Part shown: positions 1 through 27,300 of the stretch, one piece after another
Position numbering within the stretch: the stretch's first letter is position 1
How the letters are laid out: each line of letters opens with the position of its first letter
From: Oopsacas minuta
Taxonomy: Eukaryota; Animalia; Porifera
DNA length: 64,000 nt
Assembly: GCA_024704765.1 (NCBI GenBank)
Contig: JAKMXF010000177.1
Span: 496,001-560,000 of the forward strand
Reading direction: 5' to 3'
Translations under genes and position numbers: made by a program
The notes under the pieces: model-generated
Database searches by the model: none
Seen by the model: the letters and a program-made list of their open reading frames with translations, nothing else
What the model was told of the DNA's origin: nothing

Positions 1-149
1 TTGTGAATGCGATGAGTGAGTAATACAGCCTTTCATCTTTGTGCACTAGGATATCTTCAGAGAAAGAGCCATCATTACTGAGGGTATCTAAATGGTGAAA
101 TTAGTTGGCGGAGTTTCTCTGGTATTGTTGATCCGTCTTTTCAAAGGTT

Positions 150-954: not shown

Positions 955-1362
955 AGGGAATAATTAAATAAAAGCCAAAATTTAGTTCTCATAAAGTTAA
1001 GGTAACAAATAAGATAAAAACCTGAAATAAATCTGAAACATAAAATGATTTGCGGATTACAGAGAAAAATAGGGAACCATTTTTGTCAAAACAGCATATC
1101 TCTTACCCTGAATTTAAGATATGAATCCTTTAGCACAATCACATAACCTATTTATCTATTTAGGAGCGATCAATTTTTGCTAGATAACGCGAAACCGATT
1201 TAAGTGCATGACGCGCACTTGAGGGTGCGTAGCGGGCACCCAGATTAAGGCATGATTATGCGCACCATCTTAACGTTGTTTCTAAATTTCGCGGACTCCT
1301 GCATGCGCCCCACGCACCAAGATAAAGGCCTGGCCGCCATCCACTGTGTACTTATACAAACT

Positions 1363-3207: not shown

Positions 3208-3452
3208 TCTAAATAAGATAGAAAGATGTGATTTATGAAATTCAAAAACAGGTTATAGAATATTTTCAAACTTAGTTTGACGAAAATGACCAAATGCTGT
3301 AGTATATTTGAGAAGTATTACAGTCGCTAACTGAATATTCCCTATACTCAATCAGTACATTAGGAGACCTCCAAGGAAGAACTCTAACATATTAAAATTA
3401 AGAATTAAATAAAAGAATTAATGTCATAATATTCATATTCAAAATAAGAACT

Positions 3453-6005: not shown

Positions 6006-6650
6006 TTGTCCCTAAAATCTTTTCTCACCCTCGTTACACGGACTCAGCCAACTGACATAATAATGGACTTCGAAATAGGCGCTATCAATAGCTTTCGGTC
6101 TATAATGCCCATCTACAAAAGTAAGAGGATGCTTTTCAACTTCTCAAGAAACATTTGTCGTAAAGTACAGGAGCTTGGATTGCAGGCTGACTACATTCAG
6201 AATGAAGGCTTACACTTCGCATTCCACTCTTGACAACTCTTGCTTTGGCTTCACCATTTGATGTTCAGGAATTTCTCCCTCAGGTTATCGCGCAACTTGA
6301 TATTCCTCAAGCTCAGAAACTCGCTCTCTATTTGAGAAAACTTATGTTGGACGATCGCTCCTGGACGGATGTTTGTGTAACTAATGAGGTTGAAGCGTGG
6401 CACCGCTAATATAATGTTATGATTGGCTGTCACCACTCGAATATCTGGAAATTCTTTGTTACACTTCAACGTGAGCAGGGCTTAGTTGAGTCAAGGAAAG
6501 CAAAGTTCTTAAGTGGAGAAAGCCTACAAAAAGATCAAAGAATAGGGCTAATTAAGACGCTTTGAAGACATTAATTCTTAGCTATTTCCATAGAGCCTTC
6601 GTTAGAATTTCTAAAGGGAGTTGCTCATCGGTTTAGCATGGAGTCCAGTT
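6006..6650 (+). mobile_element. Degenerate MULE (Mutator-like) transposase remnant
   Basis: PTDIIMDFEIGAINSF..FNFSRNICRKVQELGLQADY matches the MULE D(F/Y)E..CxFHF.Q..WRK region. Broken frames downstream give TNEVEAWHR..IGCHHSNIWKF and LEFLKGVAH, typical of the MULE C-terminus. Multiple frameshifts and stops. Confidence 0.75.
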
Positions 6651-6874
6651 AGCCCTACTGTCAGCACAATAAAAGTGTATCGAAGTGTCCGTATCCCATA
6701 CAAAATACACGAATTACGTAAATCATTGTTGGTAACTTGGTAAAGAAACCACATTCAAATTCACATTGTAAATAACAATAATTTTGAGTGCGTACCTAAT
6801 CTACTTTGCTGAGTACTTTTTAATATATGAATTATTGATATATTTATTCTGAAGTCTCTTATTCTAATATTCTA

Positions 6875-8257
6875 GTGATGGAAGATCCTAGCTTAGACCG
6901 TAACTTCAAAGGCCATAAAGATGCTGTTACTTGTGTATCTTTCTCCCCAAATCTGAAACAATTGGCCAGTGGCTCATTTGACTCGTGTCTGATGGTCTGG
7001 CATCTCAAGCCTCAGACACGAGCTTATAGGTTTGTAGGCCACACAGATGCAATTCTCTCAATCGCGTTTTCCCCGACTGGCAACCTGATCGCTTCTGGCA
7101 GCAGAGATAGGACTGTCCGTCTCTGGCTACCAACCATAAAAGGGGAGAGCACCGTGTTCAGAGCCCACGCAGGGACTGTGAGGTCTGTGGATTTCTCCTC
7201 AGACGGACAGTCTATCCTAACAGCTTCAGATGACAAATCTATTAAAATTTGGACAGTACACAGACAGAAGTTCCTGTACAGCCTATGTGGACACACAAAC
7301 TGGATACGCAAGGCTTGCTTCTCACCAGACGGAAGACTGATCGTGTCAGCAAGTGATGATAAGACAGTTTGTATCTGGGACAGAGATAGTAAGGAAGTGG
7401 TGCAGACATTCTCGGAGCATAGTGGGTTCTCTAACTCTGTGGCTTTCCATCCGGACGGCAATTGCATAGCTGCTGGGACTACTGAGAATGTAGTAAAACT
7501 CTGGGATCTCAGGACTGGTAAGATTCTCCAGCACTACCAAGTACACTCAGCCCCAGTAAACTCCGTCTCCTTCCACCCATGTGGCTCCTACCTCCTCTCT
7601 GCTTCCACTGACTCTACCATAAAGATACTGGACTTGTTAGAAGGCAGACCCTTCTACACTCTGCACGGACATAAGGGCTCTGTACTAGACGCAGCCTTTT
7701 CTCCCACCGGGGATTACTTCGCCAGCGCCGGACAAGATGAACATGTTCTACTTTGGAGGACAAACTTTGATTCGAGAGACTTCAGTGAGGTCTTACAACA
7801 CCCACGGACTTCATCCCCTCCCAAATACTTCCACGATCCAATTCCTGACCAAATTGACACACACTCACCCTCTAAGGTGTATCCTTCTTGTACTCCTAAA
7901 GATATGACACGTGACCAACCAACAACAGTCTCTAATGTAGGTCCTGTTATGTTCTACTCTGATCCAGCATACGGACACACTGTTGATCATCCTCATACAA
8001 ACGGAACAACAGGTCCTACTAGGAGAGAGGGTCCTGTTCCTTCTGAGTACTCTACCAAACCCACCACCACACCCCTGGAGCAATGGGATATGCCCCCTCA
8101 GCTGGTTGGTACACTCGAGCGACTAGCGGGACAGATGGACATTCTCACTCAGACCGTGTCTATCTTGGAGCAGAGACTGACTATGGTAGAAGATAAGCTG
8201 AAGGAGTGTCTTGATAATCAACAGATGTTATCTCTCAATATCAGACCTCAGCCTTAG
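6875..8257 (+). CDS. POC1: Centriolar protein POC1 (7 WD40 repeats + C-terminal Poc1 coiled coil), intronless
   Basis: N-terminus [38 protein letters not shown] and the following WD40s match POC1A/B. The C-terminal [34 protein letters not shown] is the characteristic POC1 coiled coil. Confidence 0.95.
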
Positions 8258-8925
8258 CTCTGTGTACAGTGTGTGTTAGACATTCTTAATAGATTCCTTA
8301 TAACCGAGGAAATTTATATGAAATCTAACTCTACATTGATTATTAAATTGCTACTTACCTACGTAACATTATGAGCTATTTACTTCCTGGACATATTACT
8401 GTACTGGTTGTAATTACTAATTGTGAAATATTGAATTCATAATTAATTCTATTATACAGTTTTAACGCCAATTAGCAGTGTTCGCCTAATTACAAGTTTA
8501 TCAGGGACTTAAGAGTCGTGCAAATAAATTCGTGTAAATAAGATACGAATTGCTGTTAGGGGAGCTCCACTGTAATTTCAATCCCAAAGTTAAGAATTTC
8601 GAGCTCGAACTGCACAACCCGCATGTCAACGTTTTTGGAATGGTTTAACTTTGAAATTATGTCTGAATCTACTTGCTATATGAGATATTGATGGGATTAG
8701 TTAAGAATATGGCCTATGATATATCTCAACCATAATTAATCCGCATCGTACCATATGTACCAATTATCCCCAGGGATAACCAGTTATGGTACTCTGACCA
8801 TTCACTTGTTTCATCTCTTCGACCCGACAATGTTTCTATTTATGCAACATTATGATACTTTTCGTTATTTTAAAACAAATAGTTTCTTTTTGTCATAATT
8901 ACAACAATTCCTTCTTGTTAATAGA

Positions 8926-9705
8926 ATGCTAAAGTTTGCTGTTAACTTCAGCTTCCTGTTCCAAGAAGTCGATTTCCTTCAGAGATTCTCTCTCGCAGGT
9001 AAAGCTGGTTTCAAGGCAGTAGAGACTAACTGGGCTATATTAGACTATGACGTAGAAACTCTGCTCAAGACTATGTCAGATGCTGGAGTGGAGTTAATTC
9101 ATTTCGTAGCAGAGAGAAGTACTACAAAGGACGAGGAAGGGATTATCGGAGTACCAGGTAGAGAAGCAGACTTCTTAGTAACAGCTGAGAGAGCCTTCAA
9201 ACATGCCAAAGCTCTCAATTGTCACAAAATACTATTTTCTCATGGATTTGCTCCTGAGAACCCAGCTGATATCCCTAAGCACGAACATACAATCGTTGAG
9301 AATTTGAAGAAAGCAGGAGAGCTAGCTAAATACAGTGACATCACTGTATTACTGGAGCCACTAAGCAGACCAGGAGTGTTCGTTAATTCTCTCAAATTTG
9401 GTATGTCTATCTTGAAGCAAGTGAACCTCCCAAATGTCAAATTACAGTTTGACTTCTATCACGTACAGAAGACAGATGGAAATTTAACAGAGTTCTTAAG
9501 GGAGAACTTTGACTATGTCGACCATATCCAATTCGGGCAAGTCCCAGACAGACACGAGCCTGATAGCCCAGGAGAATTAAATTTTGATTTCCTCTTTGGT
9601 GTGCTTGAAGAACTAAAGTATAATGGATGGGTTTCAGCTGAGTACTTCCCTATAGGAAAGACAGAGGAGGGATTGGGTTGGCTACAAAAGTACCTTAAGA
9701 AATAA
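8926..9705 (+). CDS. HYI: Hydroxypyruvate isomerase, intronless
   Basis: MLKFAVNFSFLFQE..RFSLAGKAGFKAVE, LLEPL, VKLQFDFYHVQ, HIQFGQVPDRHEPDSPGELNF, GWVSAEYFP..TEEGLGWL: the AP-endonuclease-2/xylose-isomerase-like TIM barrel of the Hyi family. Confidence 0.93.
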   Translation: MLKFAVNFSFLFQEVDFLQRFSLAGKAGFKAVETNWAILDYDVETLLKTMSDAGVELIHFVAERSTTKDEEGIIGVPGREADFLVTAERAFKHAKALNCHKILFSHGFAPENPADIPKHEHTIVENLKKAGELAKYSDITVLLEPLSRPGVFVNSLKFGMSILKQVNLPNVKLQFDFYHVQKTDGNLTEFLRENFDYVDHIQFGQVPDRHEPDSPGELNFDFLFGVLEELKYNGWVSAEYFPIGKTEEGLGWLQKYLKK

Positions 9706-11096
9706 ATTGCTCTTTTACATCGAAACAACTAATCACTTCTATTTCATTTATTATTTTTATTATTATTATTATTATTTATTTTATCATATCATGCTCTTTT
9801 AGGATTTATATTTAATTTCTACCAAACTATCATCATTGCTTGACTCTCCGTGAGGGTTTATGTAACTAGTCGTTCCTATTAATAATTATATTTATACAAT
9901 CTTAGTTATGACCATGTAGAATAAATTACTTGTTTTTCAATCCGGATTTCTTCGTAATCTGGGACGGTGAGCGGTATTTATTTTATTTTTTGGCTAGTTA
10001 ATGTGTAAATAAGATGACCCTTCAATTATCTCATCACATACTTTCTGGGGGATGAAGATATTTAATTACTTTACATTGTCTAGTTAATGTAAGGTGGTGG
10101 TTAGGTGACCACTCTGGTTTGGGAGGTGCCCCGGTTTGCGAGCTTCCACTATACGTGTTTTATGAGTGGGGCATTCCTTGTCAATTCACCAACGAAAAAT
10201 ACACCCCTCCAGAATGGTTTTGATTTTGGAAGATTCAGACCTCTCTATGATAAAAGATTGAACTTAAATTTTAGTCAAGAATACCTCAAGGAAGCTATAA
10301 TGTTACATTTGAAAATTTCTACTTTTTCCTATTTAATATCCCTTTCTCGTCACGAAACCGAAGGAATAATGCGAATACTTTAATAACTAAATACTATATG
10401 TTTTATTTTTTGACTTTCTGTGTATAATCCATTGCGTATAGTTCGATTTCATCATCAGATAAGCTCTAAACTGACTGAATACTGGTGAAATATTGCTTTA
10501 AAAGAAAATTACGGACTGTTTCAGTCCAAAAATTATTTGACATGAAAATAAAATCTTTCTAGCTTTAGTGGTCTCTAACTTACACAATGCATACCAAATG
10601 AATTGATGTATGATATATATTAAAACTGGAAGGGTGTTTTTTTGTTATTGTTCGATTCGAACCTTTTTAGAGTTTCTTGATCAGTCTTTTAGTTTAGAAG
10701 CTATAATAAGTCAAATTTGTCGACATGGTGACAGGCGACACTATAAGGCCACAGGTCCCCAAATGCGATTTTTTCCGAATGTCATTATTTGCGATAGATT
10801 ACCAATCCATTAGCTATTTTCATGGTTACTATAGCTATATGGTGTCGGACGAGGAGAGGATATTAACATAGAGAACTAAGTCCAAATTTTCAAAATGTAA
10901 TATTATAGCTCCTTAAGGTTTTCTTGGCTAAAAATTTCAGTTTGATCTTATATCATAGAGAGGTTTGAATCTTCCAAAAATAGATTTAAACCTTTCTCTA
11001 TGATATAAGATTAAACTGAAAAAACTATTCTGGAGAGATATATTTTTTCGATCTGTGAACTGACGTGGAATGCCTCACCCATAAATTTTACGTTAA

Positions 11097-11153
11097 GTAC
11101 GAGCCTTGGCTCGTCGCTTCCCAGGTGAACTCGGCGTTTTATACCTCGAGGTA
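11097..11153 (-). repeat. Isolated Helitron-like 3' end (GC-rich hairpin + CTCGT), same as 56630-56687
   Basis: gtacgagccttggctcgtcgcttcccaggtgaactcggcgttttatacctcgagg is the approximate reverse complement of tacctcgaggcgcaatgcgccgagttcatcgcgaggcggcgagccaagggctcgtac at ~56630-56687. Confidence 0.5.
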
Positions 11154-12611
11154 TGCTATAGCCCTACTACAAGTCTACAACTCAACGGCGCCTTTTGTGT
11201 TATAATTATGTAGATAGTTTAATATTTGGGCAAATTCATTATATTTATACAACAAATATTATACCTGAGAATCTTGAAAATACTAATTAGCGATTCAATA
11301 TCCTAGACTCCCCGATAGAACTGTTGAGAGCAAATCTCTAAAATTCTTTTTGCAATTCATCGATATGTTTACTTTTAACTCATAAAACAGATAATGTTGA
11401 TTTGAATCATATTTTCTTATAATAGTAGTCCATTATAATTAGACATGGAGCCTTGACATTTTAGATAAAAAGCAAGTTTTGGTTTCAAAAGCTTCTAATA
11501 CATGTCTAATTCATATCAAATTTTTTTAACTAGCTGATTCGTACTCAGCATAAAATTTCCAGAAATTGATGTTGAGTACGAATCTTGTGGTTAAAACTTT
11601 ATCCGATACGATTTGAAGACTTTACAGTTTGGGGATGTGCCAGCGAATAGCTGACCCGCCGTATTTGAAACTGCCAGAAAATCAAGTTTCCCTATTGTTG
11701 AATTCTGTTGAATGTTTGATTTTCATTTCTTATCAACTTTTCTCTTTCTTTATTTCCCTCAAGTAGTGAGTGACCGAAACCGAAATTAGGTCGAAATTCC
11801 AATATCCCAACGGGTTTCTCTAAACCGTATTTCGGCCACAATTAGGAGAGAATAAATATTATTTATATTTTCATCATCACTTAACAAAATCAAGTTTCTT
11901 TTCGGATTCTTAGAGCTTTGATAATTTTCTAAATTACAACATTTGCAAATAACAAATTTCTTATCAATTCCATTGGTTCAGAAGATTTGCATAAGTGAAT
12001 AACGTTTACTGGACATACTATATACGTATTTATAGCAATTTTGTCAATTCGTTGATTTTGCAAATTTGACAATAAAACTGTCGATTTTGTAAAATGGTAA
12101 AAAATCCGAACCTCTCTATTGGGTCCTGTACGTAACTAATCAACATAAAGCAGATCCCCACACATCTATAGGCCTCTAAAATGCCCTAACAAATTTCAAA
12201 TACAAATTTCAGAGACACTGGTTCTATCTATAGAGTCCTACAATAAGAGAATCTTAGATGTTGCATGTTGATTTTAACATTCGACAAAATCCACCTAATA
12301 TATATATATTGCTAATTAAGAATCTGACTATCACAGATGATTATAATTTATACATACCTTTCCAAGAATCATGTTTGTACAAAGGCTGTTATATCCCATC
12401 CCAATTGAATGACTATGTACTTTGTGTGTATTTAATCTTTCTTTATCACTTCTGATAAGTATTATTTCTTTCTCAGTAGTATTAAAGTATTAGTATGATT
12501 TCGGTTACACGACTGTTGCCGAAATTCGCATTAATCAATCTATAGTATAATCAAGGTTATATATTGAATTGAGTATAAGAATATTTTGTTCCAATTTAGA
12601 ATTATATTGAG

Positions 12612-13988
12612 TTAAGCATTATTATATAGAACTGGAATGTTGAGGTTATTGATAAGATTGCTGATTCTTTGTAATGGCTGATTTGGATAGTGTTTGAAAT
12701 GGTTGTAATATGGAATCCATACATTCTCATTAACACCATTCCTAATCCCTAACCTGTCTCTAACATTCCCTTCTGCCTCATTCATCCAGTAATAGAGTGA
12801 CATCATACGAGGACACTTGGACAGCTGTCTCAGAGTACAGACACTCATCAGACACTCTGTATTCTCATCTCTCTCTGTTTGCAGTACTCTTAAGCTAGAG
12901 AGGGAGTGAGAGAGGAAGTAGTAGAGTTCTGTAGTATTCCCAACACGTAATATCTCCAGCATGTGTACAGAAGCTACTAAAGCTATATTATTGTGAGTAG
13001 AGTAGTGTTGAGGTTGTAGAGAGTTTATGAGAGATGTCACAGCTGTTAGAATATTGTGAGTTGGTTTACCTGTAGCATATCCTACTGTAGAGTCTATGTA
13101 GAGGATATTGTAGGAGGTAAGTAAACTGTTTGAGTTTAGAGAGATTGGAATATTAATGAACAGCTGTTGTAACATCTTAATTGTATTATCTCGGCTAATT
13201 CTGCTGACTGTGGGGAAAGGAGGCAAGGGAGTTGAGGTTGTGTGAGGTGGAGGAGGTCTAGGTGTGGTCGAGATTACTGGGACAGGAGTTGGTGCTGAAG
13301 TAGTAGGTGTTGTAGTGGTAGGCGTTGTAGTGGTAGGTGTAGTAGTAGTAGGTGTTGTAGTGGTAGGCGTTGTAGTTGTAGGTGTTGTAGTGGTAGGTGT
13401 TGTAGTGGTAGGTGTTGTAGTGGTAGGCGTTGTAGTTGTAGGTGTTGTAGTGGTAGGTGTTGTAGTTGTAGGTGTTGTTGTTTGCTTGGTACTGGTAACC
13501 TTTATAGTTACCTGTCTTGTTGTAGTTCTGCAATGATAATGATTCTTGTGATGTCCTCTGCAACGTTTCAGAAAGGAATATTCATTTCCTTCCTCTTCTT
13601 CTTCATCTTGTGATGATTTGACCTCTCTGGTGTTTATTTTCTTAATTTCGCAATTGGAGAATGGAAATGCTAATTCTTTCAAATTCTGACTTATGAATTC
13701 TTCAATCTGATCAGCTGTATTCTGTTGTATAATTATGGAGAATGGTCCATCCTTTCCAAACACATCCTTCATTATACTAACCTGACCATCTCCTAGCCAC
13801 AGTAAGAGAGGAGCATCTTCATCGCGAGGACTGAGTGTCGGTATGTACCAGTAGAAGAGAGAGGAATTATCAGAGCTCAGAGGATATAATCCACTCTCAG
13901 TACGAGATAGCACATATTCAACATCTCTTCTAATATTAACACTGTGTGCTACAGTGATTATACATATGATTAGCCACACAAATAGCAT
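12612..13988 (-). CDS. Secreted S10 serine-carboxypeptidase-derived pseudoenzyme A with His-rich and (PTTTT)11 mucin-like insert
   Basis: Signal peptide, then [42 protein letters not shown] (cf. S10 SGY....LFFWF.P..DAPLVLWLQGGPG.SS..GLF.E.GPF). After the insert comes [25 protein letters not shown] (cf. LNPYSW....NLLYIDxPVGTGFS). GESYAG is absent, and the ORF stops at VLYNNA*, where S10 enzymes have VYNGxLD. Intronless. Confidence 0.8.
   Translation of the reverse strand: MLFVWLIICIITVAHSVNIRRDVEYVLSRTESGLYPLSSDNSSLFYWYIPTLSPRDEDAPLLLWLGDGQVSIMKDVFGKDGPFSIIIQQNTADQIEEFISQNLKELAFPFSNCEIKKINTREVKSSQDEEEEEGNEYSFLKRCRGHHKNHYHCRTTTRQVTIKVTSTKQTTTPTTTTPTTTTPTTTTPTTTTPTTTTPTTTTPTTTTPTTTTPTTTTPTTTTPTTTTPTTSAPTPVPVISTTPRPPPPHTTSTPLPPFPTVSRISRDNTIKMLQQLFINIPISLNSNSLLTSYNILYIDSTVGYATGKPTHNILTAVTSLINSLQPQHYSTHNNIALVASVHMLEILRVGNTTELYYFLSHSLSSLRVLQTERDENTECLMSVCTLRQLSKCPRMMSLYYWMNEAEGNVRDRLGIRNGVNENVWIPYYNHFKHYPNQPLQRISNLINNLNIPVLYNNA
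13306..13482 (-). repeat. Coding 15-bp tandem repeat, 11 full units plus a partial, encoding (PTTTT)n
   Basis: Plus-strand unit ggtgttgtagtggta (variants ggcgttgtagttgta etc.), counted directly from 13306 to 13470 plus a partial unit. Confidence 0.95.
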
Positions 13989-14410
13989 TATTTAATTCTA
14001 CAGATCTCCAATACGTTATCAAGGAGCTCTCTTCAAATGCTTTATATACACATCTCGTCAGGAGTTATATGGGTGCTGTACTTACTCTAATGTATAGTTT
14101 TTAGCAATGGAAATGGTGAGCTATTTCGTTCTTTTACTCTATTTGGCGTAGACAATTTCAAAGAAATTCTGTTTCCTCTGTGTAGCGCCATCTGCCATAT
14201 CCTTAAACCCTTAACCCTATCTGGATTGTAAGTAGTCCATTCAGTCTGCATGCATGTAATTACGTGGCAAATGTATGCGTATTGTATTGTTTTGATAATA
14301 AATTACATTAATTAGTAGTCAATTTCCACAAAGCGACAATAGTGAAATGTATTGTAAGAAGATTCAGTTTGTTAGTTTCAATTTCCCTTTTTGCATTTTG
14401 TGCATATAGT

Positions 14411-14830
14411 GCGCTAGTATAGGGAGATGGCGAAACGACATGTCTAGCTGTCCGATAAATGATAATTGGTATCATATACATATTGGGTCGGATATTTGCA
14501 CCATGATTTTTTTTTTTAACATATATCCTTGTAAAATTCAAAAGCATGCTAGAGATTTGATTTCAACTTGTTGTAAGGGTAATTGGGCGCGTAGAGTCCG
14601 ATTGTTAGAGTTTCAGAGCCTGAAAGTTACAAATTCACAGATTAACCATAAGATTTCACAACTTTTTGCCACTAATTCAAAATGTTTCGAGAGAGTTCAT
14701 TTCAGATGTCGCTATAAATCCCGGGGTAATCCGTAATCGAGTATGTAGATTACATTTTGATAATTTAAACCTACATCTAAATGATTTATCACATGATTAA
14801 TCAAATTTTCATACTTATAGGTATCTATTT
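14411..14830 (+). repeat. Dispersed repeat family R2 (head gctcc.atagggagatgcc + GTCC motif; possibly Helentron/DINE-1-like)
   Basis: Shares tagggagatg..., aattggta..cat..gggtc and gctagagatttgatttcaac..gggtaattggg..gtagagtccg with 18412-19080, 22880-23514 (minus) and 44881-45000. The class assignment is inference from the short stem-loop head and GTCC microsatellite. Confidence 0.5.
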
Positions 14831-15381
14831 CAAAATGTTACTGGAAATTTCGTTGGCCTAATCCGGTGTTGGGTTCCAATTTTGACATTTCAAATGTACA
14901 TACCTTGTAGCTATGATAATCATATTCTCACAACTTGAACTTACACTTCGACTGATATTAACAATTATGTTTGAACAACTTATGATTTGTCCAATGGTGA
15001 TAAGAACATGACCCAGAACCCCGAGCTGCATTCCATTCTGTCGGCTGAACAATTTTCTTATAAAATGTGATATAGCAGATTCTAATACACAGTGATCAGA
15101 ATTAATTAAGATTACAGAACTTAGAAGTCAGGTCCCGGCCTGGTATAAAAAGAGGTGCTTAAGTAATACATTCATAACACCTTTGAGAATTTTCACTATT
15201 CGAGTCCCGATTACCTAAGATAACTAAACTGTCAAATTCCCCACAACTTGAAACTTTGATTCACAAATGAATCTAATGATATATATAATATGAGACTATG
15301 CAAATTCCAGACCTTAGTTAAGATTTATTCTACCTAATTAATCACAAATATTTATTACACGTTAATTCAATAAGTCTAGAA

Positions 15382-16716
15382 ATGGCAGAATGTTGTGAAG
15401 GTAAGAATATTCAGGCTACAGACCTCGGAAATATGAAAATAGATAATTTTGATGAAAGTTGTATATTAACTCTTAAACAAAAGATTAACCAAACCAAAGC
15501 TGATGTGAATTTGAGATTTGCTGATATCCACAACCTTCTTAACATCAAAGAGAATTCAATTATTACAAAAATAAATGAATTGTGTGAACAATTCGAGACG
15601 AGATTTGAGTTAAATTGCCAAGAATTGAAACAGTTACAAAGAGCTAGAGAGGAGAGTATTCAAATAGTTAATTTGAATACTTTAAGTGGCTCTTTAGAAG
15701 AAGTACTATCAACCATCGATTCTAATATAAATGAGATAAATAAGAGCGTCATAGTTCCTTCAGAAGTTAAAGTTTTGTGGCGAGATGAAGGACTTATTGA
15801 TTTGATTGATAATCTTTGTTCTATCCAAAAGATTGAACCTGTGACTAAGCCAGACTACGAGCAGAGGAAGAAACCATTCTGGTCTGGATGTAACAGGGGG
15901 ACAGGTACTGGTGAAATAGGAACAAGTGACATATTCAGATATGGTCTGGGATTGGATGTTGACAGGGATAAACGCGTCTACATTAGTGATCTCTGGAACC
16001 ATAGGATACTCGTATTCTCCAATGAGGGTGTGTATGAGAGAGAGATTGGTAGAGATATCCTCAGCAAGCCATACTCCGTCCATGTAAATAATGATTTTGT
16101 TTATGTAACTGAATGGGGAAATGATTGCGTTACAGAATTCAATTTGTTGGGTAATAAAATGCAGAGAGTTGGTACACATGGTAACTCACACGGGAAGTTT
16201 AACCGGCCTGCAGGTATCACAACAGATGAACGTAATGTTGTATATGTGTGTGATCGTAACAATAACCGCGTGCAGAAGTTTAACAAGCAGCTAGAATGGG
16301 TGGAAACTGTTCGACATCAGTTAATGCAAGATCCTTCAGATGTTAAAGTAAAGAATAGAGAGATATTCGTACTGGCTACCTCTAAATCGAGCAAATCTTG
16401 GTTCTTTGACTGCTGTAATACTATATTTGTGTTATCTATTGAAGATGGAGAACTATTGAGGACAATATCTAGTAAGCATGTGACTAGTGGTCGCTTCTTC
16501 TGTTTAGATAACAGCAATAATATTCTTATTAGTGACAGTCAGGTGGGTTGTGTAGTGGTGTTGTCACAAGAAGGAGAACTAGTAGCAGTGCTAGGAGACG
16601 AGGTAGAGGAGGTAACTGGTAGATCTTATTGTTACCAATCTAAAGGAATAGCATTTAATCAAGATGTTATCGTCAATGTTTGTGACAAGAATATTAACTG
16701 CCTGCTAATGTTTTGA
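15382..16716 (+). CDS. Coiled-coil + NHL-repeat (six-bladed propeller) protein 2, intronless, no RING/B-box
   Basis: N-terminal ~130 aa heptad-rich region, then NHL blades GLDVDRDKRVYISDLWNHRILVF, KPYSVHV..VYVTEW, KFNRPAGITTDERNVVYVCDRNNNRVQKF, DPSDVKV and FCLDNSNNILISDS. Confidence 0.88.
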   Translation: MAECCEGKNIQATDLGNMKIDNFDESCILTLKQKINQTKADVNLRFADIHNLLNIKENSIITKINELCEQFETRFELNCQELKQLQRAREESIQIVNLNTLSGSLEEVLSTIDSNINEINKSVIVPSEVKVLWRDEGLIDLIDNLCSIQKIEPVTKPDYEQRKKPFWSGCNRGTGTGEIGTSDIFRYGLGLDVDRDKRVYISDLWNHRILVFSNEGVYEREIGRDILSKPYSVHVNNDFVYVTEWGNDCVTEFNLLGNKMQRVGTHGNSHGKFNRPAGITTDERNVVYVCDRNNNRVQKFNKQLEWVETVRHQLMQDPSDVKVKNREIFVLATSKSSKSWFFDCCNTIFVLSIEDGELLRTISSKHVTSGRFFCLDNSNNILISDSQVGCVVVLSQEGELVAVLGDEVEEVTGRSYCYQSKGIAFNQDVIVNVCDKNINCLLMF

Positions 16717-18411
16717 GTAGTTTGTAATACAGCATGTAGTATATTTACGTATATTGTTTTGTAATATTATATACGTTTTGATTTTAACAGGAAGGTATGG
16801 AGTGGAGTATCCCAATAACGGATACATTGAGGGTTGGCTCAATTCGTTCTAGAGAGATGTCCACTTCTCTGATGTTGATAAGAATTACCTACATGTACAA
16901 GTACATTGGTGTTCGCCATTTTGCAATTCGCCTAATAGCAATGTTATTCAGAGTCTTAGAATCCATTTTGTATTTGAATGGCTTCCTCTAATAGCAAGTT
17001 TGCTTTTGAGCAAGCAAACTCCACTGATAGTAATTTGATTTCGTTTCACGAACTTGTCCGTTGTAGAGGTGTTATCTGCTTTTCGGATTATCCGTTTTGG
17101 GAGACTTCACCGTTGTACTGTACACAATCCTTTACTCCCCTGAATGCGGCCAAATATTTTGTGATTGTTTAGAGTTTAATTCAATCCAAAAAATATTAGT
17201 CATAAATTCAAAAGAAATTTCATGATTTCTAATATTGTTGTATGACGAGTATTTTATTATAGAATTTGGCCTCTAGAGCCAGCCGATAGGTTGCAGAACA
17301 CCACTATAGTCAATTCTGTAAATTATCATCAAAATATATATAGGATACTGCCAAAAAGCACTAAGTTGCGATAATTATCACCTTATCAGGTATGTATGTA
17401 GGTAATTTATGTCTATCTAAGAAAGCCATGGCCTGCTTAATTAAAGTATTAGTATACGTGTATGTCCCCGAGGATGCCTGAAGAAGAAGGCCAGCTTTAT
17501 TATTCTCATTTTGGAGATACAAAGCCTATTATTAATTGCGAATTTGATTTTCTTAAGGAATTATGTAATTTTTATTTCAATAAGCTAATTTTGAACTTTT
17601 TGACAAATTTCTAGCTCACGTAAACTAAACGTAATGAAGGAAGGCCGTTGAATTTATTAACTGGATAATTGATTCATATCTACTCTAAGTTAGTCAAATT
17701 TACAATTAATAAGAGTTATAAAAGGTTTATTTTTTTCCAAAATGAGAAGAATAAACTGATCTTATTTCTCGTATATTTTCAATCTAGAATCCTAGATCTT
17801 TCCGTCCTGTACCCTTGTTACAACTTACAAGCTATGAGCTATTAATCATAATGAACATTGAATATCTTAAGAATTACTAGTATGGTTTGCTCGTTCTCCC
17901 CGACACATATATTGTGTCCTTGATTGGAATTAATCAATACTGATAAGGTTATTAAGTTAGTAACTGCTAAACAATATGTTACTTCTTTGAAGGCTGTTTT
18001 ACCTTGGCTTATCTAATGTCATTTCATGGACTGAAATCTATTGACAACTGACATGCCTGACTCTGTGACTTCTTGTCAAATTCCACTGGTATGATTCGCG
18101 AAGTTTCGTCGAATGAAATTCATTTACAGAAATTTGGTAGAAATTTTGCTCTAATGCAATATTCGTCGGACAGAAATTATCGAAAACGGAAAAATTGGTC
18201 AAGTTGAACCTAATAATCCAAATTCTCTGTCTAAGTTGAGTTGCATTGTAATATACTCTTTATGTTTCAAAAGTAGGCACTAGCTAAAACTTTGAACCAA
18301 TAAGGCATTCTACGAATATTCCCTTTAACTTACATCTACGAATCTTCGTCAGCCCATTTAATTGGTACAGTAGGGGAATTTTGAAATATATTGGCCTAAT
18401 GTGATTTTAGT

Positions 18412-19080
18412 GCAGCTCCCATAGGGAGATGCCCTAATCTAATGACATGGGCGATGTGCGATGTCCGTACGTCCATTTGTCTCCGCTGCCGTGCGAATTC
18501 TAGCAGTCAGTTTAACATTAAAATTGGTATACATATGCATTTATGGTCGGTATTATTTTTTTCTAAAATGAATATTTCACACCTTTCTATGTAAAATTCA
18601 AAAGCAAACCAGAGATCTGTTTCAACATGTTGTCAGGGGTAATTGGGTGTGTAGAGTCCGAATTTGAGATTTTCAGAGTCTGAAAGTTACAAATTCAAAG
18701 ATTTATCACATGATTAATCATATTTTCACAACTTTTTGCAAATATTTCTGTAATGATGCTAGTGATTTCGTTTCACCTGCTAGTTAGTGGTAATCGAGTA
18801 TGTGGAATTGTAGATATCAAATTCCACATTCTCAAATCTATATCCACATGATTTATCATATGATTAATCAAATTTCGCAACTTTTTGCATATTAATTATT
18901 GAAAAGGATGTAGCGCTTTCTTTTTAACTGTTACTAAGGGGTAATCCAGCATGTAGATACGAATTTTGAAATGTTTGCATCTCTCACTCAATAATGAATC
19001 GTATGAATAATTATATTTTCACATCTTTTTGTACATAATTCAAATGGATGCTAGAGATTTTGTTTCAATAGTTAGACAGA
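18412..19080 (+). repeat. Longest copy of dispersed repeat family R2, with internal subrepeats (gatttatcacatgattaatca)
   Basis: Head gcagctcccatagggagatgccctaatctaatgacatgggcgatgtgcgatgtccgtacgtcc. The internal units gatttatca.atgattaatca..tttt..caactttttgc recur about three times and also occur at 14640-14810. Confidence 0.55.
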
Positions 19081-20012
19081 GGGTAATTGTAGGATTATTG
19101 TTCGGAATTTTATCCATAGGATTTGAGGATAGAACATGAAGTACATTAGAGGACGAATAATACTGAATATCCTGAAATATTTATCATATCCAGGAGCCCA
19201 AAATCAGTCGAGTCCGGTGCATTGCGGCATTTACACGGGGGGTTAGGAAGGGCGTGTCCCCTCTGAAAAGAACACAACCAAATAATTTTCACGGCGTTTT
19301 TGGAACTACAAATATTTGTGACGTAGACTAACGTAAATACGTAGATACAGTTTATAAGGATTTATCTTAATTAATTTACTAATTAACAGAGTTTATACTA
19401 CTTTCAATTTCTGAGATTATTTATCTTTCACTCTAACTAATAACTTACAATATCAACCTCTGTATCAATGGATTGACGTGTGTTGTGATCTTTTAATTGA
19501 GTTTTTTACTGAATTATGACCTGTAAGTAATCAGAATATTCTAACCCTGACCTAACCCTAAGATTCCTTAGATACCGCCTATCTATTATCATAATCAGCT
19601 GATAACATTCTTAACCATTTACGGTTAGGCTTGCATATTAATTGGCTATTATATCTACTACGGGATTTCTCCATAAAATATTTTGGTTCGGATGATCTCA
19701 TCGAGTATAGATTCAAATCACTTTATAATTTATGATTCTGCTCAGAATCCTTAATATATATTATTAGTATGATGTGTGACCTTGTCTCGGCTGGTCACAC
19801 TATTACTCAATTAATTCTAATGTTTCTCTCAGAATTAGTATTGTAATTATTATATTACTTTATTTGCCAGTTCTTCGATAATTTTCAACAGAACTATTAC
19901 CTCAACTAAAGATCCCTGTCCACTATATATATATTCCACGAGTTGAGGCCATACAGTACATATCACATATATATATTTATTGTAACGAATTTAATCACAT
20001 ATAATATATACA

Positions 20013-21473
20013 ATGTTGGTTACTGAGGCTTTTTGTGTTATTTACTTAATCATATGTATAATCACTGTAGCACACAGTGTTAATATTAGAAGAGATGTTG
20101 AATATGTGCTATCTCGTACTGAGAGTGGGTTCTATCCTCTGAGCTCTGATAATTCCTCTCTCTTCTACTGGTACATACCGACACTCAGTCCTCGCGATGA
20201 AGATGCTCCTCTCTTACTGTGGCTAGGAGATGGTCAGGTTAGTATAATGAAGGATGTGTTTGGAAAGGATGGACCATTCTCCATAATTATACAACAGGAT
20301 ACAGCTGATCAGATAAATAAAGCCTTAGATTTGATAGAATCATCTGAAACCTTTCAGTTTAACGACATTTCATTTGGATTCCCTAACTGTTTGAAGAATA
20401 CTGAATCTAGCGTAGTTAATAGGAAATACAACTCCGGTCACAATATAGAAACAGATGTTAGAGTGAGGGAGGATAGGAGCCACAGCTCTAGTCCTCAGAA
20501 TAGCCGCAAGCACCATCATCATCTACACAGACCTGAATCCAATAACAACTCAACTAATAAACACAAACATAGGACACATGTCCATCACCACGGTTATTTC
20601 CCCGGACCTCCTGGACTGAGAGGACCCCCGGGTCCTCCAGGTCCTCCAGGAGATTCCTCCGGTATTCCAGGTCCTCAGGGTCCAGCAGGTATTCCTGCTA
20701 TCCAAGGACCTCCTGGGCCAGCTGGTAATAACGGTGTTGATGGAATTCCAGGGGATATCGGTCCACCTGGAATAGGCGTGCCTGGTTCTCCAGGAGTATC
20801 CGGAGCACCAGGACTCCCAGGTCCACCTGGAGCTACTGGTCTCCCTGGTCCTCCAGGAACTCTTGAAACAACACAAGAGCCTGTTTTCTCTGCAACCACG
20901 CCTTTACCTCCTCCCTCTCCAGAACCTGCAGCTAGTGATATAAACGATAGAAATAGGAGAGACAGTTTTATATATTTACACGATATTCTGACTAATATTC
21001 CAATCTCTCTAAACTCAAACAGTTTACTTACCTCCTACAATATCCTCTACATAGACTCTACAGTAGGATATGCTACAGGTAAACCAACTCACAATATTCT
21101 AACAGCTGTGACATCTCTCATAAACTCTCTACAACCTCAATACTACTCTGCTCACAATAATATAGCTTTAGTAGCTTCTGTACACATGCTGGAGATATTA
21201 CGTGTTAGGAATACTACAGAACTCTACTACTTCCTCTCTCACTCCCTCTCTAGCTTAAGAGTACTGCAAACAGAGAGAGATGAGGATACAGAGTGTCTGA
21301 TGAGTGTTTGTACTCTGAGACAGCTGTCCAAGTGTCCTCGTATGATGTCACTCTATTACTGGATGAATGAGTCAGAAGGGAATGTTAGAGACAGGCTAGG
21401 GATTAGGAATGTTGTAGTTGACAAGAATCAATGGATTCCTTATGACAACCAATTCACTCAATTATTTAATTAA
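20013..21473 (+). CDS. Secreted S10 serine-carboxypeptidase-derived pseudoenzyme B with His-rich + collagen (Gly-X-Y) insert
   Basis: Same N-terminal and C-terminal S10-like blocks as gene A (2 and 5 amino-acid differences by direct comparison). The insert contains [21 protein letters not shown] followed by ~85 aa of interrupted Gly-X-Y rich in GPP (20604-20858). No GESYAG and no C-terminal Asp/His region. Intronless. Confidence 0.8.
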
Positions 21474-22616: not shown

Positions 22617-23031
22617 TATGTATTTTAAAGTGACCTGGGAACAGGATGCAGAGGAAAGAGGCCATATTCACCAAAGATTTCCTATACTATTTTATTTTTC
22701 ATTTAGTTGATTTCTTACTTAAATATATTACATCATCTTGTTCAGACTGAAAATCTTAATGCGGTTCATCGTATTATACGGGAGCCTTGTACCCACTCAC
22801 TTCCCAGGATCCTAGATAATGCGTATACTGGTCTATTGGAATAGCTTGCTTTTGTATTTCGCATAGGAAGGTGTGAAAATATTACTAATCGCCAAAAATG
22901 TGTGAAATATTCACTTTAGAAAAAATTCATATCCGACTTGCAAATCTCTGACCCAAAATGTATATATCTTCCAATTTTCACGTTAATTGGACAGCTTTTT
23001 GCATGGCCTCGCGGACGGACGTCGTACATCG

Positions 23032-23470
23032 CAGAGTTGCACGCGGGCCAAATTTTGTAACACAGGCGCGCCCCGCGGCCCGCAAGAAGCCCGCACAAAT
23101 CTTTTCGTCCCGCAAAAAACATCTCAAGAAACTATCTATGTAAATACTTAAATATTATAATGAAAGTTAGCTATTTACTTGTATTAATATATAATTCGTC
23201 CAAATGATATATACTAAATTTTATTTGTTTGTATTTAATTGTCAGTGGAGGGTCTAATTAGGAATCCTTACCAGGAACTGAGTTTCTGAAAACTGATGCA
23301 TAAATGTGAACACTTTACTAAATTTCATTTACTTATATAATCCCTAATTGGTATTCATAGTCCTGACAATAAAAAACAGTTCAGATCGGTCGTAATCATG
23401 GTGTGTTGTGCCCGGCTCACAAGGCCCGCGAAAGTTTTGGCTTGACCCGCACAGCCCGCGTGCAACTCTG
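23032..23470. mobile_element. hAT-type MITE, 439 bp, inserted in an R2 repeat
   Basis: Perfect 17-bp TIR cagagttgcacgcgggc / gcccgcgtgcaactctg with 8-bp TSD gtacatcg / gtacattg (7/8). The flanks rejoin into an R2 head on the minus strand. Confidence 0.85.
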
Positions 23471-24395: not shown

Positions 24396-27300
24396 ATGCC
24401 GAAGAAATGTGAAAATAAATGTGAAGAATCTCATGGATGGTCATTTCCAGACAAAGCATCATTTTGCATGTTCTGTAATGGTCCTCTCATATTGGATACC
24501 GGCCAGGTCGTTATTACACATGTTGAATCTCACGAGGGGAGTAATGTAGATCAACTGCATGAGACTCATGAAAACCAAACATCTGCTACAAGTACTGCTG
24601 AACGACCATCTGCTAAGGCCAATGCCAAAGATCTTTTTGAACCAAAACCTTCCGAACTTGATTCTGACCCTAATCATACCAAGTGTACTGCTGAACCTGC
24701 ATCTGCCAAAGGTACTGCTGAACAAACATCTACCAAAGGTACTGCTGAACCTACATCTGTCAAAGGTACTGCTGAACAAACATCTGCCAAAGGTACTGCT
24801 GAACCTACATCTTCCATAGGTACTGCTGAACCTACATCTGTCAAAGGTACTGCTGAACAAACATCTGCCAAAGGTACTGCTGAACCTACATCTTCCATAG
24901 GTACTGCTGAACAAACATCTGCCAAAGGTACTGCTGAACCTACATCTTCCATAGGTACTGCTGAACAAACATCTGCCAAAGGTACTGCTGAACAAACATC
25001 TGTCAAAGGTACTGTTGAACCTACATCTGTCAAGGGTACTGCTGAACCTACATCTACCAAAGGTACAGCTGAACAAACATCTGCCAAAGGTACTGCTGAA
25101 CAAACATCTGTCAAAGGTACTGTTGAACCTACATCTGCCAAAGGTACTGCTGAACAAACATCTACCAAAGGTACTGCTGAATCTACATCTACCAAAGGTA
25201 CAGCTGAACAAACATCTGCCAAAGGTACTGTTGAACAAACATCTGTCATAGGTACTGCTGAACAAACATCTGCCAAAGGTACTGCTGAACAAACATCTAC
25301 CAAAGGTACTGCTGAACCTACATCTGTCAAAGGTACTGCTGAACAAACATCTGTCAAAGGTACTGTTGAACCTACATCTGTCAAGGGTACTGCTGAACTT
25401 ACATCTACCAAAGGTACTGCTGAATCTACATCTACCAAAGGTACAGCTGAACAAACATCTGCCAAAGGTACTGCTGAACAAACATCTGTCAAAGGTACTG
25501 TTGAACCTACATCTGCCAAAGGTACTGCTGAACAAACATCTACCAAAGGTACTGCTGAACCTACATCTGTCAAAGGTACTGCTGAACAAACATCTGTCAA
25601 AGGTACTGCTGAACCTACATCTGTCAAGGGTACTGCTGAACTTACATCTACCAAAGGTACTGCTGAATCTACATCTACCAAAGGTACAGCTGAACAAACA
25701 TCTGCCAAAGGTACTGCTGAACAAACATCTGTCAAAGGTACTGTTGAACCTACATCTGTCAAGGGTACTGCTGAACCTACATCTACCAAAGGTACAGCTG
25801 AACAAACATCTGCCAAAGGTACTGCTGAACAAACATCTGTCAAAGGTACTGTTGAACCTACATCTGTCAAGGGTACTACTGAACCTACATCTACCAAAGG
25901 TACTGCTGAACCTACATCTTCCATAGGTACAGCTGAACAAACATCTGCCAAAGGTATTGCTGAACAAACATCTGTCAAGGGTGCTGCTGAACCTACATCT
26001 GTCAAAGGTACTGCTGAACAGACATCTGCCAAAGGTACTGCTGAACCTACATCTTCCATAGGTACAGCTGAACAAACATCTGCCAAAGGTATTGCTGAAC
26101 AAACATCTGTCAAGGATACTGCTGAACCTACATCTGTCAAAGGTACTGCTGAACAAACATCTGCCAAAGGTACTGCTGAACCTACATCTTCCATAGGTAC
26201 AGCTGAACAAACATCTGCCAAAGGTATTGCTGAACAAACATCTGTCAAAGGTACTGCTGAACCTACATCTGCCATGGGTACTGGAAATCCTGGGAGACAA
26301 ACTACTAAACCTAATTCTAACAGGCACACTTCCAAGAAAAATCCTGACCAACAAATTGTCAATAGAGATCCAGAAGTACGAATTTCTCCCATTGATTTAA
26401 CTAACCAAGTGCTACCTTTGAATCTTAGAATTTCAGACATTGAACCAAATAACCCAGATTGTATAACAGTACAGTTTTATACAATTATCCTTTGGGATCT
26501 TTGGGAAGAAACTGATGCCATATGTTTAATAACTGGAATTGATAATTTTTCCCATTTTCATTGTCAATTCGATCTCATAGATAGGATAACTATTCAGGAA
26601 ACTGACATAGCTCTTATTACAGGTTGTTTGAGGGTACCGCTGGATAGGATTAAGGCACATACTCTGAAATTTCCTTATAAATATGTCTTTAATGTGAGAG
26701 ACGGAGAGGTGTATGAAGATCTCAATCATTATACAAAAATTAATTTTAACCGCCATTATATGCAAGTATTTCCTCAAAATGACTCAGGTTTGAAGAAAAA
26801 AGTCTATAGACAGTTTGATATGATGATTTTGCCAGAACATCAACAGAAGGAAGAATCAAAAATATCTTTCAAAGGTTTATATTCTTACTTATTCAGCAAA
26901 AAAGACAAACTTATTCCTTACAAAGATGTAAATTATCGTAGATTCTTATCTCTAATAGCATTCCTACCTAAATTTATAGGTCTAGGTTGTTTTCAGGAAC
27001 CTTTAGGTTGTGAGAAGTTGGATAACTTCTTGCAAGCTTTTGAGGAGAGAATTCATAATTTAGTATTTATTTCTATTTCACCTCTTGATACAAATTCTCC
27101 CAGAAATTGGGACTTAGGGGACTATCATTGTGACAAAGCTAGAGAATATATGCTTCATCACTATATACAAAATATCTTTCAAAAGGGTTCACAGTTTATT
27201 CTCAAAGAAAGATTGCTATGTATCTATTTGACAGTTATCTTAATTCACAAATATAAACTAACAGATGATCATTATTTTAGTCAGGTTACAGATGAAATCG

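Follow-up and report, generated by a model that had tools for sequence, protein, structure and literature searches.

What two neighbouring genes encode when their ends are nearly identical, their middles are strikingly different, and the ends resemble a carboxypeptidase that has lost its active site is the question raised by this locus. We analysed the window (the whole stretch of 64,000 nucleotides) and its relatives, and we put at about 0.6 the probability of the following explanation as a whole: genes A and B (Table 1) would be transcribed, intronless genes for secreted, non-catalytic structural matrix proteins descended from peptidase S10.

An earlier note, made from the letters alone, had described A (minus strand) and B (plus strand) as sharing a signal peptide, an N block and a C block. 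The results confirmed this layout, with both ORFs intact at the positions in Table 1 and two pairs of inverted-repeat DNA arms coextensive with the blocks (N block: 268 nt, 99% identity; C block: 449 nt, 96% identity). The two proteins matched each other with E = 7e-165 (BLASTP), and their resemblance in the blocks was far above chance. The common N block (~89 aa) begins within the signal peptide, the tract of B starting at 20047, and the common C block comprises ~150 aa; the middles (177 aa in A, 220 aa in B) showed a DNA identity of ~38%, which is the random level. In the predicted signal peptide of A, the 12-aa hydrophobic core averaged 3.1 on the Kyte-Doolittle scale, and both proteins would be secreted. 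An NHL-repeat gene is kept as a neighbour between the two genes.

Table 1. Positions of genes A and B, their parts and the intervening gene in the window
Feature	Position	Strand	Basis or remark
Gene A, Thr/Pro (mucin-like) type, 458 aa, single exon	12612..13988	-	uninterrupted ORF
Type-specific C-terminal tail of A (...NLNIPVLYNNA*)	12612..12723	-	longer in all Thr types than in Col types
C block of A, conversion tract shared with B	12724..13172	-	96% to 20976-21424; first ~25 aa alone continue the S10 alignment
Type-specific middle of A	13173..13704	-	alignments and tandem-repeat analysis
RISR, candidate proprotein-convertase site of A	13191..13202	-	conserved RxxR
N block of A, S10-derived, conversion tract shared with B	13705..13972	-	99% to 20047-20314; PF00450; hhalign
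Predicted signal peptide of A (16 residues)	13941..13988	-	hydrophobic core; A-H-S meets the -3/-1 rule
NHL-repeat gene between A and B	15382..16716	+	Pfam NHL 1.6e-16; conserved neighbour
Gene B, His-rich collagen type, 486 aa, single exon	20013..21473	+	uninterrupted ORF
Predicted signal peptide of B	20013..20078	+	hydrophobic core
N block of B, S10-derived, conversion tract	20047..20314	+	PF00450; hhalign
His-rich cluster directly 5' of the B collagen	20499..20600	+	H167, H170, H172 invariant across both types
Collagen domain of B, 27 GXY triplets, four runs	20604..20864	+	Pfam Collagen 2e-10
RNRR, furin-type RxRR site of B	20949..20960	+	between Pro-rich neck and C block
C block of B, conversion tract, three invariant Cys	20976..21424	+	repeat arms, family alignment

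We then compared the blocks with peptidase S10. PF00450 matched the N block in 7/7 members (best E 1.1e-5), scoring 22.3-24.3 bits in B against a gathering threshold of 21.9 and 17.3 bits in A, and the N block of B scanned alone gave 24.3 bits; the match spanned only profile positions 9-68 of 420 (9-67 in A). Aligned with 24 real S10 ORFs, the N block reached a probability of 96% (E 2e-9, hhalign). The start of the C block also aligned to S10, collinear with the N block (P = 0.0035, hhalign), and when columns were shuffled as a control, ~1/100 shuffles reached the observed score. The first ~25 C-block residues resumed the S10 alignment exactly at the end of the N block, and the alignment crossed the junction unbroken, its score being 58 before the blocks were joined and 77 afterwards, which bears out the proposal that the insert sits in the short GPF...NPYSW loop. 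These alignments show, at the level of sequence, S10 descent for the N block and for the opening residues of the C block. The remaining ~130 C-block residues resembled neither S10 nor any other entry in PDB, Pfam and 1.84 billion representatives, and sliding-window hhalign returned nothing significant or collinear past ~residue 35 of the block, so the original assignment of both flanks to S10 holds for the N block and those ~25 residues only.

At the structural level, S10 chains were the top matches of the PDB profile search, though weak. As leads, 97 of 100 named Atlas feature matches were PF00450, and the structural neighbours of the Atlas model were all alpha/beta hydrolases, S10 first, and spanned both blocks, in a low-confidence model (pLDDT 0.42) with TM of 0.28-0.35 by query and 0.21-0.49 by matched model. 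Because both AF2 predictions were of low confidence (pLDDT 36.5 for full B and 37.9 for the C block), no fold is established, and it may be that the two blocks do not fold together as a single domain. Of the suggested reuse of a hydrolase fold, the S10 ancestry of the N block is thus retained, and a stable fold is unproven.

The GxSxG motif was absent from the N and C blocks of all nine family proteins. The proteins ended 152-180 aa past the NPYSW equivalent, compared with a median of 349 aa in 14 real S10 ORFs, and the Ser-to-His distance in S10 enzymes is ~255 aa, leaving the C block at half the needed length. RNA-like contigs joined no downstream exons to the ORFs, and no S10 relics were found downstream of the A and B stops. 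With GxSxG absent and the part that should bear Asp and His lost, A and B are not enzymes, in agreement with the earlier note. Two of its finer assignments were not supported: the equation of GESYAG with a 10-residue segment and that of VLYNNA with the Asp motif VLiYnGD both lacked statistical backing at residue level, and the final six residues of the A tail (VLYNNA) were found in this species only. The invariant Ser in LVASxHM may be a remnant of the nucleophile, on an alignment without statistical support.

The middle of A contains, in order, a Cys linker, an acidic patch, a Cys-flanked His cluster (13527-13568), TTTTP repeats (13291-13478) and a Pro-rich TTPRPPPP segment. The repeat has a 15-nt period in 12.5 copies and encodes TTTTP, present ~14 times in the protein; Thr-rich tracts occurred in every Thr-type ortholog. 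The middle of A thus has the Thr/Ser/Pro-rich tandem repeats of mucin-like stalk proteins, and it may be O-glycosylated. In B, the triplet runs cover residues 198-215, 217-228, 232-252 and 255-284, and two of the three breaks between them (GxSSG and GIG) are conserved in orthologs. Across the collagen types we found 27-29 triplets in 3-4 runs, as expected of Collagen (PF01391), with breaks conserved in four species, and B would be predicted to form trimers. B has 19 His overall, and family proteins have 10-26 each. The inserts had been called unrelated; this is true of the repeat module (collagen or Thr-rich) and the linkers, which are type-specific, but a Cys, the acidic patch, an HxHGHH-type His cluster and a TTPxPPP motif align in the middles of both types. 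An RxxR sequence lies 12-13 residues ahead of (T/I)NIP, preceding the C block, in 9/9 family proteins, and 4/4 collagen types carry RxRR at the same aligned position. The family therefore has a sequence of the convertase-site type, at which cleavage would be expected. Cys counts were even, with 6 in Thr types and 4 in Col types.

To place the pair among its relatives, we compared Thr-type orthologs (P0003, P0006, the L004 ORF 2611-4065 and the L006 ORF) and Col-type orthologs (P0004, P0005 and P0007). Four species had an intact Thr and Col pair with conserved neighbouring genes, and an intact Thr-type ORF was found in a fifth assembly (L006). The gene order Thr(-)/NHL(+)/Col(+) recurred in L001 and L004, and in one species the Thr and Col genes lay on different contigs. 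The family is undescribed and restricted to a narrow clade. Within species, the N and C blocks of the paralogs were 96-99.6% identical, compared with 73-91% between species. The tree of the N and C blocks clustered by species (99-100% support), whereas that of the middles clustered by type (100/100), and the tract edges coincided in four species. These two opposite groupings indicate that repeated gene conversion homogenises the N and C blocks while the middles stay orthologous lineages; recent duplication in each species is unlikely because the type-specific middles are orthologous. The idea of swappable cargo is accordingly misleading, the two types being old orthologous lineages in four species whose identical flanks come from conversion and not from recent swapping.

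The dN/dS values were 0.09-0.23 in N blocks, 0.21-0.39 in C blocks and 0.12-0.36 in middles (middle of A versus Thr-type orthologs: 0.25-0.29; C block of B between species: 0.24-0.35), a codon-level pattern in which every part is under purifying selection. In run X4, which is RNA-like by its coverage pattern only, depth over the B ORF was 550-2200, falling to 0 past 21455, no joints were seen, and the run held 90% of the words of A's unique middle. Coverage by the DNA-like runs X1-X3 was continuous across the locus, and no joints occurred within the ORF or beyond it. The RNA-like coverage points to transcription of both A and B.

Taken together, what A and B would have retained from the enzyme is strands 1-3 (N block) plus the NPYSW/LFLDxPVG strand that opens the C block. 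A module of ~180-220 aa would have entered the short loop that follows GPF, with loss of the nucleophile elbow and of the Asp/His part. In both types the module would start with the Cys linker, the acidic patch and the His cluster, continue as a rod of O-glycosylation-type Thr/Pro sequence (A) or as a collagen segment of ~27 triplets (B), and end in a Pro-rich neck and the convertase-type site (RxxR; RxRR in B) before the C block. A small enzyme-derived head would thereby carry a His-decorated module shaped like a rod, which convertase cleavage would probably open or release, and a role in the extracellular matrix is likely. Against this reading, a rigid collagen rod within a loop would be topologically awkward unless RxxR is cut. 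A bolder version, which we regard as a long shot, is that the head is split: its N and C halves, flanking the rod and kept matched by conversion, would be separated by cleavage, and the collagen and mucin paralogs would pair these halves and assemble together, end to end or laterally, into a His-decorated scaffold of the glass-sponge skeleton, B being the long-sought gene of the GPP-rich spicule collagen.

The ancestry of the C block allows another account, in which the N block alone comes from S10 and the C block past its first strand is an unrelated, lineage-specific domain, making the proteins chimeras in which an N-terminal S10 fragment, the repeat module and a novel domain are joined, and no split hydrolase scaffold. 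The failure of the C-block profile to find S10 in any of the databases searched, the empty sliding-window alignments past ~residue 35 and the low confidence of both AF2 runs would fit this account. However, the C block opens with an alignment to the S10 element that comes directly after the N block, the predicted strand-helix-strand-helix order corresponds (at low confidence) to beta4-alphaA-beta5-alphaC, and the hydrolase neighbours of the Atlas model span both blocks; we consider the chimera doubtful while allowing it some weight. The lost catalytic motifs, the truncation relative to S10 and the low-complexity middle might suggest that A and B are copies of an S10 gene, either pseudogenes in decay or duplicates arising in the assembly, whose middles are filled with low-complexity junk, but the data already contradict this idea, which is scarcely credible: ORFs of both types are intact in four species and that of the Thr type in L006, dN/dS is well under 1 throughout, the GXY interruptions, RxxR and Cys counts are conserved, RNA-like coverage is confined to the ORF, and the DNA-like coverage of X1-X3 is continuous and free of joints.

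Two further readings give the proteins a more specific function. A matrix of biosilica, in which the His cluster and the GPP-rich collagen or Thr/Pro rod would bind or template spicule silica like the His-rich tails of glassin and perisilin, draws on the way hexactinellid silica proteins join a folded, often enzyme-derived or Cys-rich domain to a His-rich disordered part, perisilin being CAP-like with a His tail and hexaxilin derived from an MBL fold (PMC10772126). Hydroxylated collagen with Gly-3Hyp-4Hyp has been reported in glass-sponge spicules (PMC5867623), B keeps the same 16-residue segment in all four species, and the narrow clade also fits. Against this, the three glass-sponge silica proteins identified so far (hexaxilin, glassin and perisilin) are unrelated to the A/B family, and each family protein has a single short His cluster and neither HD repeats nor a tandem three-domain unit, where glassin is defined by tandem His/Asp-rich, Pro-rich and His/Thr-rich domains (PMC10772126); we regard this reading as unlikely. 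Soluble recognition or adhesion molecules resembling the defence collagens (C1q, collectins, ficolins) would likewise have a Cys-containing N-terminal region, a kinked collagen stalk, a neck and a C-terminal globular head, here with a mucin-stalk partner, and the triplets with conserved breaks, Pro-rich neck, ~160-aa C-terminal block with three invariant Cys and high ORF coverage in the RNA-like run agree with such a layout. Yet the conserved RxxR would sever head from stalk, unlike in collectins, the C block resembles no lectin, C1q or fibrinogen domain, and Atlas feature matches of COLFI type reach only ~0.70, the chance level, which leaves this reading improbable.

New here are the four-species pair with its neighbours, the gene conversion, the purifying selection, RxxR in 9/9 proteins and the RNA-like coverage of the ORFs. 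We know of no earlier case of an S10 carboxypeptidase pared down to a non-catalytic remnant that bears a collagen or mucin rod in a loop. The pair also offers an unusually clean natural case of mosaic evolution, with two coding tracts homogenised in four lineages and the type-defining middle orthologous. If the organism is a glass sponge, the abundant-looking, secreted, His-rich A and B would be candidates for the organic spicule matrix, and also for the reported spicule collagen, for which the literature examined names no gene. A role in skeleton or silica is suspected, and A and B make the spicule-matrix question directly testable by proteomics and silica precipitation.

Compared with S10 enzymes (cathepsin A, CPY, CPVL/SCPEP1 and plant SCPL), the N block of A and B aligns to the N-terminal strands up to GPF and the start of the C block to the NPYSW...LFLDxPVG strand. 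Entry into the secretory pathway is common to both, as a prediction for A and B, and many S10 enzymes are also cleaved into two chains. Unlike the enzymes, A and B have GGPGCSS degenerated to GDG(Q/R)VS, lack the GESYAG elbow and roughly half of the domain, catalytic Asp and His included, so that no peptidase activity is possible, and carry a module of 180-220 aa where the enzymes have a loop of ~10 residues.

The hexactinellid silica proteins (glassin, perisilin and the TIL-His protein of Aphrocallistes) resemble A and B in being secreted, often single-exon, restricted to one sponge clade and made of His-rich disordered sequence joined to a folded or enzyme-derived domain (PMC10772126, PMC10282587). 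A and B have no detectable sequence relationship to them, carry collagen or mucin rods, and have a short, internal His cluster in place of a tail or tandem HD/P/HT repeat; their own association with silica is hypothetical. Among short non-fibrillar collagens (sponge short-chain, C1q/collectin-type and mussel byssal preCols), B shares the short triple-helix segment, the conserved breaks and the non-collagenous flanks. His-rich sequence also adjoins collagen in the mussel byssal preCols. The ends of B are the two halves of an S10 remnant, whereas those of short collagens are C4, C1q, lectin or silk-like domains, and, unlike them, B has a paralog with identical ends that bears a mucin-like rod. 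Finally, inverted paralog pairs under conversion, such as palindrome arms and duplicated globin or opsin genes, show the same near-identity within species and divergence between species, with tracts ending where homology ends; in A and B, by contrast, conversion is limited to two coding tracts around a non-homologous, type-defining middle, with the same edges in four lineages.

The window had the base composition of AT-rich eukaryotic DNA (GC 31-44%) and held numerous long single-exon ORFs, including an AAA-type giant of 4001 aa; genes of single-exon style have been described for glass-sponge genomes. Gene A, of the Thr/Pro (mucin-like) type, and gene B, of the His-rich collagen type, were divergently oriented on either side of an NHL-repeat gene and were linked by two inverted DNA arms (268 nt, 99% identical; 449 nt, 96% identical), between which A and B were ~38% identical in DNA, the random level. 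The pair of ORFs with shared ends (the N and C blocks) and differing middles described in the earlier note was therefore real and robust. The middle of A carried TTTTP repeats with a 15-nt period (12.5 copies); in that of B, 27 Gly-X-Y triplets (Pfam Collagen 2e-10) came after a His cluster. Both middles also had, at aligned positions, a Cys, an acidic patch, an HxHGHH-type cluster and a TTPxPPP motif, indicating that the whole A and B proteins are homologous. The inserts, taken earlier to be unrelated, are so in the repeat module and its linkers and not elsewhere; only this module with its linkers defines the type of each protein.

The A/B protein family is tiny, and literature searches found no paper describing it. 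When 5.8 billion proteins were searched by a word index, five relatives besides A and B were recovered, and an N-block word search returned these 7 proteins again, without bridging forms. The C-block profile, run as a full HMM search against 1.84 billion representatives, yielded only the known relatives, some fragments and P0012, which was rejected as a spurious repeat protein. The relatives of A and B derived from four further samples, each assembled from long reads. Both types were present in three of these (P0006 with P0004; P0003 with P0005; an uncalled intact ORF of locus L004 with P0007), and the gene order Thr type (minus), NHL (plus), collagen type (plus) was kept in two of the three. 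In the related species S2, the pair was divided between two contigs, the Thr type on L003 and the collagen type on L002, with transposon genes at both break points, and the N and C blocks of the separated paralogs were still 97-98% identical. A fifth assembly (L006) held a Thr-type ORF with TTTTP x 17, in a multicopy layout explained either by a palindrome made in assembly or by a genuine inverted array; here the gene callers chose an antisense (GVVVV) ORF, equivalent to that opposite the TTTTP repeat of A, over the real Thr-type gene. A C block fused to a retroelement sequence (P0008) lay on a contig of 3x coverage (L005) from the S2 sample, and represents either a copy disrupted by a transposon or the DNA of a second, rare organism.

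We compared the blocks and middles within and between species. Within every species, the paralogs were 98-99.6% identical in DNA over the N block and 96-98.5% over the C block, and between species these blocks were 73-91% identical. Orthologous middles shared 54-81% identity, and paralogous ones were at the random level. In a maximum-likelihood tree of N+C codons, the paralogs paired by species with 99-100% support in 4/4 pairs, and the tree of middles was split by type (100/100). The inner edges of the identical tracts coincided within one or two codons across four species. On these sequence comparisons, A and B evolve in concert: gene conversion acts on two coding tracts, and the core that they flank is non-homologous. 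The "swappable cargo" of the earlier note is better read as two old paralog types, with gene conversion maintaining the likeness of their shared ends. The dN/dS between species was 0.09-0.23 for the N block, 0.21-0.39 for the C block and 0.12-0.36 for same-type middles, indicating that all parts encode selected protein. With these values and the coverage of the locus by sequencing runs, the readings of A and B as pseudogenes or as an assembly artefact were rejected.

The descent of the blocks from S10 serine carboxypeptidases was assessed with profile searches. PF00450 matched 7/7 N blocks (best E 1.1e-5, profile positions 9-68), and S10 chains were the top, though weak, matches of the N block in a PDB profile search. 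As a comparison set, S10 genes were found on metagenome contigs by the WLNGGPGCSS motif, and 24 full-length ORFs with GESYAG were kept; the same scan of viral contigs gave 0 matches. In profile-profile comparison with the 24 S10 ORFs, the N block reached a probability of 96% (E 2e-9) and the C block alone a P of 0.0035. The C-block segment [22 protein letters not shown] aligned to NPYSWN..ANvLFLEsPvGVG, the S10 element immediately following the N-block match. With the N and C blocks joined, the score rose from 58 to 77 and the alignment was continuous across the junction, and column-shuffled controls equalled the C-block score in ~1/100 trials. The collinear alignment, the gain in joined score and the shuffle controls together support the proposal that the module sits in the GPF...NPYSW loop.

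The rest of the C block (~130 residues) showed nothing significant or collinear against S10, a Pfam scan of C blocks gave no match, and the C-block profile against the PDB gave chance matches only (myosin Vb, E about 0.9). The resemblance of C-block LYYWMNE to S10 LFYWFFES was judged coincidental, the alignment being non-collinear, and a fibrillar-collagen NC1 domain for the C block (Atlas feature matches, score about 0.70) was treated as chance. AF2 gave a pLDDT of 36.5 for full-length B (7-row alignment) and 37.9 for the C block (11 rows). The protein-language-model and structure neighbours of A were almost all S10 or alpha/beta hydrolases, at lead-only scores. In our estimate, descent of the whole C block from S10 is favoured by odds of about 3 to 1. 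The S10 remnant proposed earlier was thus largely right for the N block and the insertion point and is unproven for most of the C block. The same applies to the suggested equivalents of GESYAG and of the strand before the catalytic Asp, as nothing beyond the C-block start was significant or collinear; the VLYNNA tail, read as that strand, was confined to this species.

The loss of catalytic parts was confirmed. GxSxG was absent from the blocks of 9/9 proteins, and 152-180 residues followed the NPYSW-equivalent position, where real S10 ORFs have a median of 349. Parts that might restore catalysis were sought downstream, and a three-frame reading of 900 nt after the stops of all eight genes revealed no S10 relics, nor did sequencing run X4 show joints in or after the B ORF. 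By these sequence features, the A/B-family proteins are not enzymes, whether or not the C block is S10-derived.

The locus was present in four runs of one sample. Three runs covered it evenly, like DNA, while X4 reached a depth of 550-2200 over the B ORF and near zero on either side (0 downstream from 21455, about 10 upstream). X4 also reached the unique middle of A: its loose ends ran into this middle, and of the words sampled from it the run contained 90%. By this coverage pattern X4 behaves like RNA, supporting single-exon transcripts of both genes. In B's middle, X4 differed from the assembly by 2-3% (7 non-synonymous and 5 synonymous changes). At window position 20698 (codon 229 of B), X4 had G and the assembly C, which changes Ala to Gly and the 'AIQ' break to a regular 'GIQ' triplet; this collagen interruption is therefore polymorphic.

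A hydrophobic signal-type segment opened 9/9 proteins, the called start of P0005 falling inside it, and A-H-S stood at the predicted signal cut in A and B. Mature Cys counts were even and constant by type (6 in Thr types, 4 in collagen types), and the collagen breaks GxSSG and GIG were kept in 4/4 collagen types. RxxR occurred 12-13 residues ahead of (T/I)NIP in 9/9 proteins, as RxRR in 4/4 collagen types, and is a conserved candidate site of convertase type between the Pro-rich neck and the C block. By our own estimate, a loop containing a rigid rod of about 25 nm would be hard to close; cleavage at RxxR would free the C-terminal end of the rod, with the N block staying attached.

The neighbourhood of the pair was partly shared among species. 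An NHL gene of 443-447 aa lay directly upstream of the collagen-type gene in 3/3 related species, and is a conserved neighbour by position. The same giant AAA gene followed the collagen-type gene in S2 (L002) and the related species S3 (L004); the antisense ORFs inside it are probably by-products of base composition. In S2 (L003), the Thr-type ortholog was preceded by an AP_endonuc_2 gene and then, in the WD40 slot, by a 459-aa gene lacking annotation; synteny of the flank thus appears to be conserved. The high-depth stretches flanking gene B are probably dispersed repeats or transposon fragments.

Coordinates of features in the window and in loci of related assemblies
Sequence	Positions	Strand	Feature
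Window	6875-9705	plus	WD40 gene and xylose-isomerase-like TIM-barrel (AP_endonuc_2) gene, ahead of A
Window	12612-13988	minus	A, uninterrupted ORF, 458 aa
Window	13264-13536	plus	Antisense 90-aa ORF with GVVVV repeats, opposite the TTTTP repeat of A
Window	15382-16716	plus	NHL-repeat protein, no signal peptide
Window	18500-19290 and 22830-23430		Depth in all four runs far above that of adjoining sequence; numerous loose ends and joints
Window	20013-21473	plus	B, uninterrupted ORF, 486 aa
Window	24396-36401	plus	Single-exon ORF, 4001 aa, dynein-type AAA domains
Window	24459-26354 and 24674-26440	minus	Long antisense ORFs inside the giant AAA gene
Window	53135-54454	minus	NHL-repeat protein, no signal peptide
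L002 and L003 (S2)	4508-5110 and 8052-8921		Break-point transposon genes: DDE_3 transposase and reverse transcriptase
L005	4044-4733		C block (78% identical to the window's) in frame with retroelement integrase-like N-terminus, P0008
L006 (15-kb contig)	1-14427		Four identical intact copies of a 462-aa Thr-type ORF in alternating orientation; also one broken copy and copies cut by locus ends

Our best inference for A and B is a structural extracellular role; a role in silica is a testable hypothesis. Hydroxylated Gly-3Hyp-4Hyp collagen has been reported in hexactinellid spicules (PMC5867623), and B retains [16 protein letters not shown] across four species, which makes it a candidate gene, and only that, for spicule collagen. 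S10 peptidases are defined by the Ser elbow together with Asp and His, and the A/B family has neither feature. The tandem HD/P/HT layout of glassin is likewise absent from the family. Perisilin, hexaxilin and the TIL-His protein combine a folded, often enzyme-derived domain with a His-rich disordered part (PMC10772126, PMC10282587); A and B have no sequence relationship to them, but are alike in theme to these glass-sponge silica proteins, a folded or enzyme-derived domain joined to a His-rich disordered part.
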